DNA of 64,000 nt, from NCBI GenBank assembly GCA_002189035.1, contig CM007991.1:62001-126000 (forward strand), given 5' to 3'. Source of the stretch: Utricularia gibba (Eukaryota; Plantae; Magnoliophyta). Below, piece by piece: positions 15,504 through 25,371 of this stretch. The notes under the pieces were generated by a model. It worked only from the letters and a program-made list of their open reading frames with translations, searched no databases and was not told the origin of the DNA. The translations under genes were made by a program, and so were the position numbers. How positions within the stretch are numbered: the first letter of the stretch is position 1; every line of letters starts with the position of its first letter.

Positions 15504-15808
15504 ATTCTCACCCACAACATCATCGATCAATCCGAGATTAGGGCTTGCTGATCACAGGTAAATCTTGTCGCCAACTACGCTTCTTTCTCGGAAACTGCGT
15601 CTTAACTCGCGCCCTTTCCCTTTTGTTCTCCTGGTTTTTGTTCGCCGGAAGTAAATGATCCCGAGTATGTGTTGTGCCGGTTCTTTCTCTTCTCTTTCTC
15701 ATGGGTGGGGATTTGTCGTCGAATGCGTTTTAACTTTTGGTCTCCCGTTTCGGATAAGTAGTGATCCCGATGTTTCGCTTCATTTTGATATTACGTAGTT
15801 TGTGAACA

Positions 15809-18800
15809 ATGGTGAGGAAGAGGAGGAGTGCTTTGCCTGCAAGTGGTGGATCTGAAGCGCAGGAAGGCAGTGGCGACCGTGCCGATGAACAGCCTCGACA
15901 AATGCAACAGCCGACGCTGCCTCCATCGCAAGGTGGGAGAGGATCGGCTCCTCAGCCTGGAGCATATACTGGGGCTGCTGGTTTAACCGGAAGAGGATTT
16001 GCGCCTCCTGGGCATCAACAAGGGCTGGGTGCTGTGCGTCAGCACGAGGTCCCTAGTGTAGCGGCGGTTTCCGGTGCGCCGGCAAGGACACCGGATCCGG
16101 AGTTGCACCGGTCGACGCATGAAAGGCCTATAGTCGCATCTTCTCATCAACAAGGAGGATCTGTAGAAACTGGGACTTCCGATCAGTTGCACCAACTGTC
16201 TCTGCAACCTCCGTCACAGCCTGCATCAAGCATGTCCATGAGATTTCCATCCAGACCAGGGCTGGGAACTAAAGGTACCAAATGCATGGTGAAGGCTAAC
16301 CATTTCTTCGTTGAGATACCTGATAAAGATCTTCATCACTATGATGTAAGTTTTTTATATTGAGTCGTGCTTCTGTTGTTATTATGATCCATTTGTTGAT
16401 GTACCGTTGGAATGTTGGGAGATATGAATGATACGATTTGCAGGTGACCATAACACCTGAGGTTAAACGTGCAGCCTCTCGGCTAGTTATTGGTGAATTG
16501 GTGAACCGGTACAAGGAATCTAGCTTGGGGAATAGGCTCCCGGTTTATGATGGAAGGAAGAGTCTGTACACTGCTGGGCCCTTGCCCTTTGGGTCAAAGG
16601 AATTTGAGGTTACTTTAGCTGATGAAGATGATGGCCGTAGCAACACCATGAGGTTCGCTTCCATGGACTACTCTTATGTTGAACTATGATTTTTCTTTTC
16701 TCTCATGATACTCTTTGAGTTGAATTCTGTGAGCAGGAGGCAGAGGAAATTCAAGGTTGTTATAAAGTTTGCTGCTCGAGCTGATTTGCACCATTTGAAA
16801 ATGTTCTTGTGTGGAAGACAACCTGATGCACCTCAAGAGGCGTTACAAGTCTTAGACATTGTTTTACGTGAACTTCCCACTTCAAAGCATGTCTCTTTCA
16901 CGCCTTTTCATTACGTTTTCTTCTAGTCTCCACCTTTCTCCTTAACTCTCTTTTTCTCTAGGTATTGCCCTGTTGGTCGTTCCTTCTATTCTCCAAACTT
17001 GGGTAGGAAACTGCCCCTGGGTGGTGGACTTGAAAGCTGGCGTGGCTTTTATCAAAGCATTCGGCCAACTCAGATGGGATTGTCACTGAACATTGGTAAT
17101 CAGTTGGCTTGGTGAATCGGATTAATGAATTGAGCCAAGCCCAAGAGCCTTATTGGTTGTGTTTATGATCATTGTTGATCGTTTTCTTTTTTTCAATAGA
17201 CATGTCATCCTCTGCTTTCATGGAGGCAATCCAAGTAATCGACTTTGTATGCCAACTCTTGAATAAAGATGTTTCGGCAGGGCCGCTTTCTCGTGATGAC
17301 TATAAGGAGGTTTGTTCTGCTGTTTTCTGCAAAAAGAAAAAAAAAAAGAAACTGATTGTTTTCTATAGTTTTCTGATTATTGTCCCTTTGCATCTTTTTC
17401 ATCAGATAAAGAGAGCTCTGAGAAATGTACGAATTGAGGTTACCCACAGAGGGAGCCTGCGGCGGAGGTACCGCATCTTTGGTTTGTCATCACAACCAAC
17501 TAGAGATCTAAGGTTGGCGTTAGAATTATTTCGCAGCAATTCTGTTAGGAGTGTGGATCCAAGTTTAGTACATTTGTGGATATGAGTGTTGTTACATCTT
17601 TGGGATTATCTGGTGATGTTTTTTTGTACGGTGGCTTGTAAAATTTGTCCCTTTCTCTGATTATAAAATTTGTCTCTGGCTTCTCATGCATTCTGTTGTT
17701 CAGGTTCCCTATTGATGAAGGCGGGACAATGAAATCTGTAGTGGAGTACTTTAGTGAGACGTATGGGTTTTCCATACAGCACACTCAATTGCCATGTCTC
17801 CTCGCCGGCAATCCTCAAAGGCCTAGTTTTTTACCGATGGAGGTTTGCAAGTTACTTTGAGATAAGCGTGTTTTTTATGTATGCTATTGCATTATTTTTC
17901 GTTTTTTTCATGCTTAGGTATGTAAGATAGTTGAAGGTCAAAAGTATTCCGCGAGACTAAATCAAAAGCAAGTTACCGCACTGCTGAAGGCCACTTGCCA
18001 ACGCCCTCAGGATAGGGAGAATGACATAATACGGGTTGACATAACTTTTACCTTATTTGACTGCATCTCGTCTTAGAAGCATTATATTTTTCCTGATCTT
18101 CTTAACAGACTTTCAGGCGTAATAATTATGCAAATGATCGTTTTGCTATGGAATTTGGAATAAGAATTAGAGACGAAATGTCCGAGGTGGAAGCTCGTGT
18201 TTTGCCTCCTCCTATGGTAAGCATAACCTCTATTCTTGTTTTTCTAGTTCCAAATCCCATTTTCTTTGTTCTAATTGCGTTACAGCTGAAATACCATGAT
18301 TCTGGCCTAGAAAAGCAATGTCTCCCTGTAGTGGGACAATGGAGTATGGATAATAAGGTATATTTCCAATTTCGTTTGCTTTTAATGCCGTTTAGTCTTG
18401 AATACACGTTCTTCTCAATTTGATTAAAACTTGGGCTGTTGTTCCATCATATGGCGGTTAATTGTCATGTAGAGGATGGTGAATGGTGGGCAGGTGAACA
18501 GTTGGGCCTGTATTAACTTTGCTAGAAACATACCAGCCAATGTTGCACGTAAATTTTGCAGTGAGCTTGCTGCTGTGTGTGCGGCTTCTGGAATGGTTTG
18601 GCAAAACCCTTCTTGTTTTTTTTTTTCCTCAAGTTGGTTTCTTAACTAGATATAATATGGGGTATTTTTTTCAGGTTTTTAATCCCAATCCCATTGTGCC
18701 ACTTGTTACTGCTCGTCCTGATTGTCTAGAAAATGTTTTGAAGTCAACGTCTCATGATGCAATGCAGAAGTTACCACCTGAGAAAAAAGAGCTTGATTTA

Positions 18801-20549
18801 CTGATTGTTTTGCTGGCAGAGAGGGGCTCGTTGTATGGTGAGGTTAATTTCTGTAACTTAAAGCATTGAAGCTCTTAGATGAATGGGTTCATAACTTGTC
18901 CAGGTGATCTGAAGCGGATTTGTGAAACTGAGCTTGGTATCGTGTCACAATGTTGCCTTCAGAAGCATGTATTTGAGATGAAGAATCGGTACTTGGCCAA
19001 TTTGGCTTTGAAGATTAATGTTAAGGTCGGAGGAAGGAATACTGTGCTCTGTGATGCAATTTCAAGACGAATACCTCTTGTCACTGACGTTCCTACTATT
19101 ATTTTTGGTGCTGACGTCACACACCCGAGTCCTGGGAGGATTCCAGCCCATCCATTGCAGCAGTATGTTGTATTTTAAATTCTTTTATCTACATTCTTTT
19201 TTAAGTTTGTTTATACACCTGTTTTTTCTCAAGGTTGTTGCATCTCAAGATTGGCCAGAAGTTTCAAAGTATACTGGTTTAGTATCTGCTCAAACTCATC
19301 GTCAGGAGCTTATCCACGATTTCTATAGAACCTATCAGGATCCTAAGAAGGGGACTTGCCATGGTGGCATGGTAAGGTGAGATGAAATACATGTGATTTT
19401 GATACTCATTTATGTTTCCTTGCTTCCCTTGCTTTTACGGATTTCCTCACCTGATTTGTTTGTTATTTTACAGGGAGCTGCTTGTATCATTCTTCAAAAC
19501 TACCGGGCAAAAACCAAAACGGATTATATTTTATAGGTCAGTTGTCAAAAAGAGGCTGGATTAGAATGCTTTTTAAAGTACATTCGATTGATACCACGTA
19601 TCTGTTTGCCTTGCATCTGTACATTCTCTCTATTTGCAGGGATGGTGTTAGTGAAGGGCAGTTCTCTCAAGTACTGCTCCATGAAGTCGATGCTATACGC
19701 AAGGTAATGTTCAGTTTGAATTTTTCCCGTATTGATGTGGTGAAAAGATGCTAGTTTTATGACACGGTTAATCAACTGCTATCACGTGTGTGTTGTCAGG
19801 CGTGTGCTTCTTTAGAACCTAACTATCAACCGCCTATTACATTTGTTGTGGTTCAAAAGCGGCACCATACTCGCTTGTTTGCTAGCAACCATGGTGACCG
19901 TAGGACTGTTGATCGAAGTGGTAACATCTTACCAGGCACGGTTGTTGATTCAAGGATCTGCCATCCAACCGAGTTTGATTTTTATCTATGTAGCCATTCT
20001 GGCATACAGGTAAAGGTTCTTGACCCGCGTATGCATTTTATGTTGATGGCTGATACGTTTGATTTAATAACAGGGCACTAGTCGCCCTGCCCATTACCAT
20101 GTATTGTGGGATGAAAACAATTTCAGTGCTGATGGCCTTCAACTACTGACTTATAGTCTATGTTACACGTAAGTTCTTGATTGATTGTGCTTGTTTCTTA
20201 TACTTTTGTTTTTCATGTGCCCCACATTGTGTTTGCAGCTACGCGAGGTGCACACGGTCGGTTTCCATCGGTACGTGTAATCATGATCATTCAGTCTTCA
20301 AGCTTTGCATGCTTTTAGGGCGTTGTCTTTAGTTAAGAGTTCTGTTCCCCTCAAACAGTGCCTCCTGCATACTATGCTCATCTAGCTGCATTTCGTGCTC
20401 GCTACTACATGGATCCACAGTCATCAGACAGTGGTTCCATATCCGGCGGACGTGGTGCCAGAAGTTCTAGGGGCCCGGATTTCGATGCTGGTGTGAAGCC
20501 GCTCCCTCAGGTCCGTGAAAATGTGAAGAGGGTTATGTTCTACTGTTGA
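15809..20549 (+). CDS. AGO1: Argonaute, divergent AGO1-clade member, 20 coding exons; one apparent -1 frameshift at 19134-19136 and one GC-AG intron
   Basis: MVRKRR start and Gln/Gly-rich extension; [19 protein letters not shown]; PAZ (VEVTHRG...[12 protein letters not shown]); MID ([30 protein letters not shown]); PIWI with [27 protein letters not shown]; ends VMFYC*. Confidence 0.93.
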
Positions 20550-21741
20550 GGGAGGGGCGTGAAGCGTGAAGTTATCTCAAATAGGTGGTCGGTCTCTGTA
20601 CCTCAGTTGATATATGAACTGAGGTTTTTTGGGCTTGAAGTTTTTTGTGCTTCATACCCCTGCTAGGCCTGGCTAATGGGGTCTGCTTTTTGCTCTTCCC
20701 TTGTGGCTGTGTGCCGCGTTATACCAACTCAACCACGAGTTGGAGTTCATCCGGTTTTTATTTGGTGATGAAAGAAAGAAATATGTATGTTTTTAGGGTG
20801 GTATTTAACAGTGCTTTCCCTGATGGATAACTTGGAGAAATGGGTTTATATTGGTGTGAATTGGGGAGTGTGAAGAAGGCTCCCACGCCACCAATCGACC
20901 AGTGACCCTGCTAATAATCATGGCACCGCACAGCACCATTGCTTTTCTGAAACTCCCCAAAAGGAATCGACATTATCAAGAATCGTGTAAAAGAGAAAGA
21001 GTAAAGTTGAAAACCAAGCGTAGAATAAAGACCCAGAAGACACAGCCAGGCAGCCAGCCCAGCCCCACGCCGAAAAAGCAGGAGGGAAGAAAAATAATAA
21101 ACACCTGTTCTTCTGGGCACTGTAAAACTCTCCTCAACTCATGTTCAGGGTTCTTGTTCACTGAAAGGAGAATGATTAGCGAGTGAGTGTGTTGTCATCA
21201 TAAATGTAAGTAAATGGTTCTTACAACATCTGTGGTCGACTCGGAAGGACACTTGTCCCCTTTCGAATTCCTTTCATAATTCTCTGCTTTTACACTTCTT
21301 CCTTTAGGACCCCTCATCTGCCCCTCTAAGCTAAGTTGCTGCCTCCCTGCATTTCCCAATCAATAGCTGCCTCTGCCTATTCTCTTCCGCGTTTTCCATC
21401 AGGGCGTTGTGTCCCTCATTCAAGTTTCATGCTTAATGCCTGCTAGCTCCATTTTGAGAGGTTTAAGCTTTTTTGCGGTTTTGATCTGTTTGCTGGTTCC
21501 TTGTTGGTCGCTGCTTCATGGGAACTTTTTACGGTTTCTTCTCCGTTTTCACTGACTGGCTGCTTCCTTCAATGAAAAAAGAGGCGCTTCTACCCCCCGA
21601 AATGATGAAAGCTTGTTTTTCGATACCTCCTACTTTAGACATGCATTGCTTCAATTTTATCTTGCCCTTGCAAAGTTTTGTATTTGTGGGCTTGGGTGTG
21701 TGCCAAACGACGGGGACTGAATTTCTGTCTTGTAGGTGTGG

Positions 21742-23384
21742 ATGCTTAAAATGTGGCTTCGAGTTGTCCTGCTATTTTGTGGAGTTATCGCACTTCCAGC
21801 TGCAGGTTCAGCCCTAACAACAAGTCGTGCTTGATTCAAGAGCACATCCTGTGGTTATCTCATTATTGTTGCATTTTGACTGCAGATGGTTTTGTTGGGA
21901 TAAACATCGGGACGGAGGGTTCCAACCTACCTACTCCTTCTGAAGTTGTTGCGATTCTCAATGCTCATCAGATAAGTCATGTCCGTCTGTTCAATGCGGA
22001 TGCTCGAATCCTAACCGCCCTCTCAGACACAGGGGTTGAGGTCATGGTGAGTGTTGCCAATGAGGAAGTTCTTGGGATCGGGGAATTGCCCTCAAGAGCT
22101 GCTGCTTGGATTAGTCGAAACGTAGCAGCTTACTTGCCCTCCACAAATATTACCGCCATTGCTGTAGGCAGTGAGGTCCTTACATCCATCCCACATGTTG
22201 CCCCTGTTCTTGTTTCTGCCATGAACAACTTACACAAAGCGCTTGTAGCATCCAATCTTGCCTCCGCAGTGAAAATTTCGACTCCGCATTCCATGGATGT
22301 TATTCCTTTCCCCTTCCCACCTTCATCAGCCACCTTTAACACATCCTGGAGATCTACCATGTTTCAGATCCTTCAGTTCCTGAGAAATACCGAGTCCTTT
22401 TATATGCTCAACGCTTATCCATACTACGAGTATGTGAAAGGTAAGGGCATATTTCCTCTCGAATACGCCCTTTTCAGAGAACTGCCATCTGCCAGGCAGA
22501 TAGTTGATCCCAATACCCTCTTGCTCTATAATAGCATGTTTGATGCTTTGGTTGATGCTACTTACTACTCTATAGCTGCTCTGAACTTTTCGGGTGTCCC
22601 TGTTGTTGTCACCGAGACGGGGTGGCCTTCATTCGGCGGCGCCAGTGAACCTTATGCTACACCTGAGAATGCCGAGACATACAACAACAACTTGATAAAG
22701 CGAGCAGCCAACGACACCGGACCACCCAGTCAGCCGTCGATTCCTGTCAATGCCTACATCTATGAGCTATTCAATGAGGATCACAGACCTGGTCCTTCCT
22801 CGGAGAGAAACTGGGGGATACTTTTCCCCAACGGCAGCGCTGTGTATGAACTGAGTTTGATTGGACCAGGTGTTGCCTCTGGGAACTCATCATCTGGTTT
22901 CTGTGTGGCGAGGCCGAGTTCCGACGAGGGCTCCTTACGGAAAGGACTGAACTGGGCCTGCGGTCCTGGCCGTGCTGACTGCGCTGCTATTCAGCAAGGG
23001 CATCCTTGCTTCGCCCCGGATACACTGCAGAACCATGCTTCTTACGCATACAATGACTACTTTCAAAAGATGCAGAGCTCCGGAGGAACCTGCGATTTCG
23101 GCGGCACGGCCATGATCACCACCGTTGATCCAAGTAAGCTTCTAAAGTTGCTTCTGATTCAGGATCGATTATAACAATCTCGTTGGCATGATTTGATGTG
23201 TGCAGGCTATGGATCATGTAGATTCAGTGGAGCATCGAACGCCACCAGCACACAGTTATCGTCGCCAGGGATCGGACCGGCGAGATCAGATTCCAGGAGG
23301 TCCAACAATGGTGAGCATTTACTCTGCTTCAACACAGTCATCGCAGCAGTGGTGAATACGGGTTTCCTTTGGATAGCGTGGTAG
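21742..23384 (+). CDS. Glucan endo-1,3-beta-glucosidase (GH17 + X8, probably GPI-anchored); exons 21742-21805, 21886-23132, 23207-23384
   Basis: Signal peptide MLKMWLRVVLLFCGVIALPAA; FVGINIG, AVGSEV, NAYPYY, VTETGWPS, YIYELFNED; X8 FCVAR...LNWACG...HASYAYNDYFQ...CDFGG; hydrophobic C-terminus. Confidence 0.95.
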
Positions 23385-23606: not shown

Positions 23607-25371
23607 TCAAACCACCGCCCTGGCGCCGCCGTGCTCCTCCGCGTCCGACAGCCACTCCCCTCCCTCTTCCAACGTTGCGGCGGTGTGTCGGTGTCCTTGT
23701 CCAAACGCCTTTATATGATCCTTCAAGGACCTCTTATGCTTAAAATCGGATCCACAGGAACAATACCACACTTTGCCGCAATTCTTCTCGTGCGTCCTCC
23801 AGTCGCCTTTCACCGCAAACGGCTTCGAACACCTCCGGCAACCAAACGGTTTCGCTCCGTGCTTCCTCTTGTAATGCGTCTGGAGTGTGCGGAAGTCCTT
23901 CAACGGCCGGCCCCTAGGATCCTCCACATTGTGTTTGCATCCCGGCCAGCAGCAGTAACACGGCAGCCGGAGCATCGCCGTGGGCTGAGCGCCGCGGAGG
24001 GATTCCGGACCCTTCCGGTACTGTGAGCCGTGGCCCCACATGTGCATCTGGTGTAATGCAAGACATCTCGACACTGAATTGAATTGAATTATGGCAACCA
24101 CAACAAGGAACACCATTAATAAACACACTTCTATCAACAGCTGCTCCTGACATTCACTTCCATAGACAAAAAAAAAACACCGACTTTGTTTGGGTGTTAC
24201 CCTTTTGACTATTCACATAATTCACCCCATCCATGTCTTTTTTTTTTTATTATTACAGCCTAAGAAAATAGATTCCCGGGTGCAGAAATTGATATTGAAC
24301 CTGAAAGGAAAACAGTATATAGATAAACAAGCATATTGAAAATCGCATGTTGAAGGAAGGAAGCCCTATTGATTTCTATAGCGCTAAGGGGGTTTTGGAG
24401 GAGCTATGATATGTATGCAGGTAACTAGGGCGAGGAGGAGGAATCTGTAATGAACTGCACAAATTTAAAACTTGTTTTGGGTTAGCAGATTCTGAAGCGT
24501 AGGTCAACCCCAGGATTGGTGGGGATTTGTAAGAAGAGTAAGTCAAGTTATGGGGAGTATGTGAACTGATGACAAGCAGTGCAGAAGCCTCCTACTAATT
24601 CAGGAAGATAGGAATCACATCACAGCTGAAGAAGCTTATCTTTGTGTTGGACGGGGAAAACAACGCTGGAGACTTGTGGTAAGGAAAGCCGTGCAGATGG
24701 GAATCTTCACATTCACATCAGAGGTTATATTTGTACGGATAGGGAAAACAATGTTGGAAACTTCTGGATAAGAAGGAAAAGCGCAGTATTTATGAAGTGT
24801 AAAGGGGGTAAGTGAATGTCGAATTTTCATCTGACTGAAAACAGCCAAATATGGAAACTGAATGACACACAAGTCATGCACAGGAATGAATGTTTAGATC
24901 TGAATCTCAGTTTCCTTGTGTTTCAGAAAAGAGCTGGTAATTCGAAAAGAAGCACAGAACAACTAGGGCAAAGATCCTCGCTTCATTCATGAACCACACA
25001 CACACACACACACACGCTCGCACCTGTAAATTATTGTATCTGTTGAAGTTCTTGAAGCAGATTGGACATGAGAATTGGGTAGGGCCAATGAGGATCTGGG
25101 AAGGAGTGGGAATCCAGTACTGACCACCCATGTTAAGGTTGTTCAACGGCAGCCCGGAGAGTATATCAACGCCATCTTTCTCAGCCGCCTGATCGTCCGA
25201 CGAAACCCTGGATCCCAGATCCGAGGGTTTCTGGCTAGCGAGCCCTATTTGGAGGTCTACGGGGGCGTGCTCGTAGTGAGGGGAGAGGAAAGAGTTTGCA
25301 GATTCAACAACTGAAGTGGCGCTGGAATGAAGAGGAAGGAAATTGAAGCACGTTGCTTGGGCATCTCTCAT
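23607..25371 (-). CDS. WIP-type C2H2 zinc finger transcription factor (WIP2/4/5-like); two exons around a ~970-bp intron; the true start may be further upstream
   Basis: [34 protein letters not shown]|[19 protein letters not shown]...[15 protein letters not shown]...[12 protein letters not shown]...[15 protein letters not shown]. Confidence 0.93.
24995..25014 (+). repeat. (CA)10 microsatellite next to the WIP splice donor
   Basis: Read directly. Confidence 0.85.

Follow-up and report, generated by a model that had tools for sequence, protein, structure and literature searches.

An expressed, strongly diverged AGO1-derived gene of Utricularia gibba with a decayed miR168 target site that is predicted to escape miR168 control

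Within the window, i.e. the whole 64-kb stretch of Utricularia gibba DNA analysed here, lies a gene, termed AGO1x in the following, which we consider likely to be an expressed, intact and strongly diverged derivative of AGO1 that has been uncoupled from the miR168/AGO1 loop by the decay of its miR168 target site. Plant AGO1 is under feedback control by miR168 (PMC7356095). For U. gibba, three AGO1 homologues and one AGO10 have been reported, in the context of an unusual small-RNA machinery with a truncated DCL3, no AGO6 and few 24-nt siRNAs (PMC8333044), and AGO1x is most likely one of these three AGO1 homologues.

The exon structure of AGO1x was derived from the splice joints of RNA contigs, with an uncertainty of about 2 nt at the exon boundaries. 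The gene is compact with introns of 64-191 nt, its ORF starts with MVRKRR at 15809, and the reading frame runs without interruption through every joint in a joined protein model that carries an X at a homopolymer break (19134-19136). This model was used for local comparisons only, and database searches were made exon by exon. The features of the locus are as follows:

15809-20549, forward strand: AGO1-derived gene AGO1x, 20 coding exons, about 1007 amino acids
15809-16345, 16444-16650, 16735-16886, 16962-17094 and 17199-17307, forward strand: exons 1-5
17404-17510, 17702-17840, 17916-18033, 18108-18216 and 18286-18357, forward strand: exons 6-10
18473-18594, 18674-18836, 18903-19159, 19234-19376 and 19474-19536, forward strand: exons 11-15
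19640-19701, 19798-20005, 20070-20168, 20239-20269 and 20358-20549, forward strand: exons 16-20
15797-20847, forward strand: transcribed span according to RNA contigs, with one contig (run X6) beginning further upstream, at 15656
19134-19136, forward strand: G-run that is one base short, GGG in the window vs GGGG in all contigs of the gene from the runs X6, X7 and X8

Expression was assessed with assembled contigs (Logan) from three presumed RNA runs of two studies, referred to as X6, X7 and X8. In X7 and X8, one spliced contig each (3368 and 3371 nt, respectively) spans 15797-20847, and in X6, which stems from an accession with SNPs, the locus is covered in pieces; AGO1x is transcribed and correctly spliced. 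The contig depth in X7, which is a poor measure, was 24 for AGO1x and 81-92 and 12-20 for two other AGO-like copies. As assembled, the window contains a frameshift in the PIWI exon at 19134-19136, and an extra G behind 19133 restores the conserved reading. Since all RNA contigs disagree with the window at this position, we attribute the frameshift to a homopolymer that was miscalled in long reads. Apart from this position and one further homopolymer in the 3' UTR, X7 and X8 agree with the window, and the X6 contig piece that covers exon 1 shows seven other differences, one of which is located in the 5' UTR. The miR168 site is unchanged in all three runs, including this X6 piece.

16095-16115, forward strand: decayed miR168 target site on the codons (D)PELHRS(T) in exon 1 of AGO1x

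At this site the window reads ATCCGGAGTTGCACCGGTCGA, which encodes P-E-L-H-R-S, and a base-by-base comparison with canonical miR168 (UCGCUUGGUGCAGGUCGGGAA) yields the pairing string |||x::||||||:x||x|||x, counted from miRNA position 1. This reproduces the pairing count of the sequence-only reading, which had listed mismatches at positions 4, 14, 17 and 21 and G:U pairs at positions 5, 6 and 13, and it bears out the claim of a disrupted seed, given that the mismatch at position 4 is joined by the G:U pairs at positions 5 and 6 and that the seed match has changed from CAAGC to CGGTC. The penalty of the Allen/psRNATarget-v1 type (1 for a mismatch, 0.5 for a G:U pair, doubled at positions 2-13) amounts to 8.0, compared with usual cut-offs of 4-5, and the duplex energy calculated with RNAduplex is -25.1 kcal/mol, which corresponds to 57% of the perfect match at -43.7 kcal/mol (ratio 0.57). 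The Arabidopsis/Brassica site UUCCCGAGCUGCAUCAAGCUA, in the form quoted for Brassica AGO1 in PMC9916703, reaches a penalty of 4.0 and -34.1 kcal/mol, i.e. 78% of the perfect match (ratio 0.78), and the canonical site of Arabidopsis also has a mismatch at position 2 and a G:U pair at position 8. Near-complete complementarity, meaning a penalty of at most about 4-5 together with an intact seed, is thus absent at 16095-16115, which lies outside all of these usual limits. In dinucleotide-shuffled versions of the 5-kb transcribed region, a score of 8 or lower is reached by chance in 7% of cases. Since the sequence at 16095-16115 retains part of the complementarity and falls precisely on the PELH codons, we regard it as a decayed form of the ancestral miR168 site and not as a random match. 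Anywhere in the 64-kb window, we found no match to miR168 with three or fewer mismatches, no MIR168 locus and no Rfam family.

The extent of the decay becomes apparent when the site is compared with those of other AGO1 genes. Six comparators were fetched as DNA, five of which come from named Lamiales genomes and one from a Logan contig, and their sites, which are located on the same codons as the site in the window, show penalties of 4-5 and energies of -33.6 to -36.7 kcal/mol. Even an Andrographis AGO1 copy with the peptide PELRQA has a miR168 site that is still within the 4-5 penalty range. Relative to the comparator consensus CTCCCGAGCTGCACCAAGCTA, the six sites carry 0-2 base differences, whereas the window site differs at 7 of the 21 bases. 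Three of these seven changes are synonymous and affect the Pro, Leu and His codons, and the other four, which turn Gln-Ala into Arg-Ser, sit opposite the miR168 seed. At the protein level, we sampled about 95 N-terminal fragments and 119 full-length AGO1s, in which the region reads PELHQA, PELYQA, PELRQA, SELHQA, PDLHQA and similar. The Gln after the His/Tyr/Arg position is kept in every sampled AGO1 N-terminus that has the region, and the Ala that follows it is missing from four fragments only (three with PELHQT, one with LELHQH). Arg-Ser at the seed-matching codons was found in none of the about 200 sampled N-termini.

A decayed site could still be functional if the miRNA had changed along with it, and the sequence-only reading had named such a co-evolved miR168 variant as a finding that would refute escape. 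The miRNA list published for U. gibba (Cervantes-Perez et al. 2021, PMC8333044, Table S2, ShortStack) contains three MIR168 loci (unitig_748, unitig_32 and unitig_747), each with canonical UCGCUUGGUGCAGGUCGGGAA. Neither a variant that matches the site nor any small RNA with the sequence required of a co-evolved miR168 is listed. The in silico results provide good support for an escape of the AGO1x mRNA from slicing by miR168, and the expression of AGO1x may, as we infer, be unbuffered.

The assignment of the gene to AGO1 relies on several lines of evidence. Matches to the Pfam domains ArgoN and Piwi were obtained on individual exons, and the protein model can be aligned over its full length with named AGO1 proteins in which all six Pfam domains are present; on this basis, AGO1x possesses the domain set N, L1, PAZ, L2, MID and PIWI. 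AGO1x shares 70-73% identity with AGO1s and 60% with an AGO10-like protein across the same region. The AGO10-like protein for its part is 71% identical to AGO1, which is about the distance of AGO1x itself from AGO1s (about 72%). The MID exon matches the MID of Arabidopsis AGO1 with E = 5e-11 and that of AGO10 with E = 1e-7. In maximum-likelihood trees, AGO1x falls among the asterid/Lamiales AGO1s with an end branch of 1.07-1.21 compared with a median of 0.12-0.15, i.e. a branch about nine times longer than those of other AGO1s, but a placement of AGO1x outside all other AGO1s was not rejected by the AU test (p = 0.51), so that its position within crown AGO1 is insecure. The sequence-only reading had described the gene as AGO1-like, which agrees with the MVRKRR start, the PELH remnant, the AGO1-type C-terminus (ending in KRVMFYC) and the higher identity to AGO1s than to the AGO10-like protein. 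We base the conclusion that AGO1x derives from AGO1 on its first residues, the remnant of the miR168 site and the pattern of identities, and not on the tree.

How strongly the protein has diverged was quantified on a set of 590 near-invariant columns from 38 AGO1s. AGO1x keeps 519 of these columns (88%) and changes 71 (12%), whereas the worst of the other AGO1s changes 36 (at most 6%) and most change fewer than 10. The altered positions include Q101R and A102S in the site codons as well as P650A, D651E and N652R in the MID loop. The catalytic motifs with Asp, Glu, Asp and His, including YYAHLAA, are present according to our reading of the model, and we take the residues within them to be the slicer tetrad Asp-Glu-Asp-His.

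18816-18827, forward strand: MID nucleotide-specificity loop AERG, which is PDNNG in AGO1/AGO10, placed by alignment to 4G0P

Aligned against LLIVILPDNNGSLY from the structure of the Arabidopsis AGO1 MID domain (4G0P), the MID loop of AGO1x reads AE-RG and is one residue shorter than PDNNG. Of the 119 full-length AGO1s, 111 carry either PDNNG (107) or PDING (4). The very long branch and the changed loop provide indirect support for a neofunctionalisation of AGO1x, which we regard as plausible.

Searches with the exon-1 protein, an exhaustive representative search and a search with the exon-12 ORF revealed no orthologue of AGO1x outside U. gibba. For the AE-RG loop in particular, the exon-12 ORF search returned three matches at about 54% identity, none of which is orthologous. 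The best exon-1 match (Logan DRR494324, L001) was considered as an orthologue and ruled out, as it represents a canonical AGO1 with an intact miR168 site. Regarding the other AGO1 copies of U. gibba, the exon-1 protein search for their N-termini gave distant fragments, none above 46% identity, with the same outcome in the exhaustive representative search, and a profile built from full-length AGO1 and the window exons retrieved 120 canonical AGO1s of other species and no U. gibba protein. The RNA contigs do contain other AGO-like copies, whose 30-nt loose ends read AGO1-like (RPGKGVDGIR) and AGO10-like (RPGFGHLGTK), and most of those contigs that fit AGO1x at all are less than 90% alike to it.

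These observations suggest the following course of events. In the ancestor of AGO1x, the PELHQA codons would have contained the miR168 site that is shared across euphyllophytes, and seven bases of this site would then have changed, three of them synonymously and four giving Arg-Ser opposite the seed. Canonical miR168 would now meet a seed mismatch flanked by two G:U pairs, in addition to three further mismatches and one further G:U pair. Such pairing should be well outside the tolerance of plant miRNA slicing, so that the AGO1x mRNA most likely stays uncut and AGO1x would be uncoupled from the miR168/AGO1 homeostatic loop. The loop itself is presumably retained on the other AGO1 copies of U. 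gibba, which might account for the persistence of the three canonical MIR168 genes. Together with the long branch, the changed specificity loop further suggests that AGO1x could sort a different set of small RNAs, in which case the miR168 feedback would be irrelevant for this protein.

16213-16233, forward strand: weak second miR168-complementary stretch GTCACAGCCTGCATCAAGCAT on the codons SQPASSM

It could be argued that AGO1x is still controlled by miR168, the degenerate site or this second stretch giving rise to weak slicing or translational repression, so that the site would in effect have been relocated; we consider this quite improbable. The second stretch, which was found by scanning the whole transcript for miR168 complementarity, pairs contiguously with miR168 positions 3-15 (two G:U pairs), leaves positions 1, 2, 16, 18 and 21 unpaired and scores better than 16095-16115, with a penalty of 7.5 at -25.2 kcal/mol (58% of the perfect duplex). 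A score of 7.5 or lower was obtained in 4% of shuffles and two sites of 8 or lower in 0.1%, the same register in the six other AGO1 genes shows penalties of 9.5-12.5, and a synonymous change from GCT to GCA in the window closes a position-9 mismatch that is present in all six comparators. Moreover, the canonical Arabidopsis site is likewise imperfect at positions 2 and 8. However, both stretches remain at 7.5-8.0 vs cut-offs of 4-5 and at 57-58% of the perfect energy, the 3' part of the pairing at 16213-16233 includes three mismatches, and the likeness of this stretch to a miR168 target is largely due to conserved Ser-Ser codons (TCAAGC, in the PASSK motif of all AGO1 genes), which mimic a seed match. 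The stretch may thus be seen as a weak candidate for relocated or residual control, i.e. a minor rival, and probably not as a working site. Alternatively, AGO1x might be buffered by another small RNA, either a lineage-specific miRNA or secondary siRNAs from miR168-cut canonical AGO1 transcripts, in analogy to mosses and liverworts, where AGO1 is targeted by other miRNAs (PMC5426797), and to Arabidopsis and tomato, where secondary siRNAs from AGO1 mRNA are known (PMC6193080). This appears highly improbable, since none of the 11 non-conserved, lineage-specific U. gibba miRNAs (PMC8333044) pairs with the AGO1x mRNA (best penalty 10) and since, with contigs of other AGO-like copies that are mostly less than 90% alike to AGO1x, few perfect 21-mers for trans-acting siRNAs are to be expected.

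The loss of the site might also be a side effect of relaxed selection, acting on a redundant copy from whole-genome duplication that drifts to loss, without adaptive escape and without a new function. Such a scenario, which we judge to be unlikely, would account for the degradation of the whole N-terminal extension, which comprises about 150 amino acids vs 190-250 in other AGO1s, is about 40% identical to their N-termini and lacks a detectable Gly-rich_Ago1 domain (Pfam PF12764) on exon 1, a domain that most AGO1 N-terminal fragments carry. It would also be in line with the excess of altered columns (12% vs at most 6% in any other AGO1) and with the frameshift in the window assembly. The frameshift, however, is absent from all AGO1x RNA contigs, and a frame of 1007 codons has stayed open after about one substitution per site, with 88% of the invariant columns kept, along with the catalytic tetrad as read from the model. 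In addition, AGO1x is spliced and expressed in three runs, with a contig depth (a poor measure, as noted) that is intermediate between the values of two other AGO-like copies. The 10 SNPs between accessions are split into 5 synonymous and 5 non-synonymous ones, or 4 and 2 when the disordered N-terminus is left aside, a ratio that would fit purifying selection and that, with such small numbers, provides a weak hint of it. Taken together, we favour an intact AGO1-derived gene that has probably left the miR168 loop.

Across ferns and seed plants, few regulatory circuits are as conserved as the miR168-AGO1 loop. Against the about 200 AGO1 N-termini sampled here, in which the Gln-Ala codons matching the seed are essentially never lost, their loss in AGO1x stands out. 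If the prediction holds, AGO1x would represent a ready-made experiment, i.e. an AGO1-type protein freed from its own feedback, with which new Argonaute functions after genome duplication could be studied. AGO1x also indicates that the three AGO1 homologues reported for U. gibba are not equivalent.

With respect to known systems, AGO1x is best compared with canonical AGO1, which Vaucheret et al. reportedly described in 2004 and 2006 as being under miR168 feedback in Arabidopsis. Both share an exon-rich gene, the MVRKRR start, the PELH codons in place, the homology across N, PAZ, MID and PIWI, the tetrad and the C-terminus, whereas in AGO1x the seed match is destroyed, the N-terminus is short and without detectable Gly-rich_Ago1, the loop reads AE-RG and the identity is about 72%. 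An engineered counterpart is 4m-AGO1, which Vaucheret et al. are said to have reported in 2004 and in which silent mutations in the miR168 site of the wild-type single-copy gene reportedly lead to over-accumulation and developmental defects. In both genes the pairing is reduced by mutations within the miR168 site, but 4m-AGO1 is engineered and its mutations are silent, whereas the change in AGO1x is natural, alters two residues and affects an extra, diverged copy.

AGO10, AGO5 and the AGO18 of grasses are members of the AGO1 clade without a known miR168 site and with specialised cargo or roles, and AGO18 is said to sequester miR168 in rice (Wu et al., 2015). Like these AGO1-related Argonautes, AGO1x is predicted not to be a miR168 target, but they represent old and widely shared clades, whereas AGO1x keeps a remnant of the site together with an AGO1 N-terminus, and no orthologue was found elsewhere in our searches. 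By analogy, it is conceivable, if doubtful, that AGO1x is a eudicot counterpart of AGO18, i.e. a recent AGO1 derivative outside the miR168 homeostat with a changed loop for 5'-nucleotide sorting, which might carry a different small-RNA load or act as a decoy. Finally, AGO1 homeologues of Nicotiana benthamiana and tomato differ in their sensitivity to miR168, according to what PMC6193080 relates of Gursinsky et al. 2015. As in the case of AGO1x, these are paralogous AGO1 copies with unequal miR168 control; in the account given there, the target site is intact and an adjoining indel of 18-21 nt modulates cleavage, whereas in AGO1x the site itself appears to be lost. Overall, the interpretation given by the sequence-only reading is partly supported, and we regard AGO1x as a natural, predicted miR168-insensitive and diverged paralogue of AGO1.

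The diverged AGO1-derived gene carries, in addition to the decayed miR168 target site in exon 1, a second stretch (16213-16233, at the QPASSM codons) that is weakly complementary to miR168 and that, owing to a synonymous change, surpasses the equivalent register of six further AGO1 genes. One intron of the gene (16887-16961, joining 16886 to 16962) has the ends GC..AG rather than GT..AG, which is backed by RNA contigs in all three runs with spliced contigs of this gene.

Compared with all RNA contigs of the gene, the window as assembled is one G short in the G-run of the PIWI exon (19134-19136), and a 3' UTR C-run (about 20656) lacks one C; the gene appears frameshifted in this assembly. Both one-base deficits are probably long-read homopolymer miscalls.

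Short spliced contigs of the same diverged copy, with 0-3 differences, were also found in run X12, from 2024, whose label gives another organism (organism B). This run may stem from a close relative, or else from a sample with this plant in it.

Contigs of the diverged copy in the run labelled as organism B (coverage without exon 1)
16472-16653, spliced contig coverage
18484-18827, spliced contig coverage
19929-20389, spliced contig coverage

The next gene, encoding a beta-1,3-glucanase, lies about 1.2 kb downstream, and two minus-strand ORFs resemble, judging by the ORF list alone, exons of a C2H2 zinc-finger protein.

Features downstream of the AGO1-derived gene
21753-23174, plus strand, glycosyl-hydrolase family 17 beta-1,3-glucanase that ends in an X8 domain at its C-terminus, largely a single ORF
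23607-24137, minus strand, candidate C2H2 zinc-finger exon
24907-25371, minus strand, candidate C2H2 zinc-finger exon

Contigs that match conserved exons of the AGO1-derived gene (18903-19121 and others) at less than 90% likeness reveal at least two other AGO-like copies, with contig depths, a poor measure of expression, of 81-92 and 12-20 in run X7, one of the three RNA contig runs. Loose contig ends of these copies read RPGKGVDGIR, which is AGO1-like, and RPGFGHLGTK, which is AGO10-like. One of these copies encodes the canonical MID loop (...LLPDNNGSLY...). In the diverged copy, the MID nucleotide-specificity loop (18816-18827) reads AE-RG, where almost every AGO1 or AGO10 protein has PDNNG.
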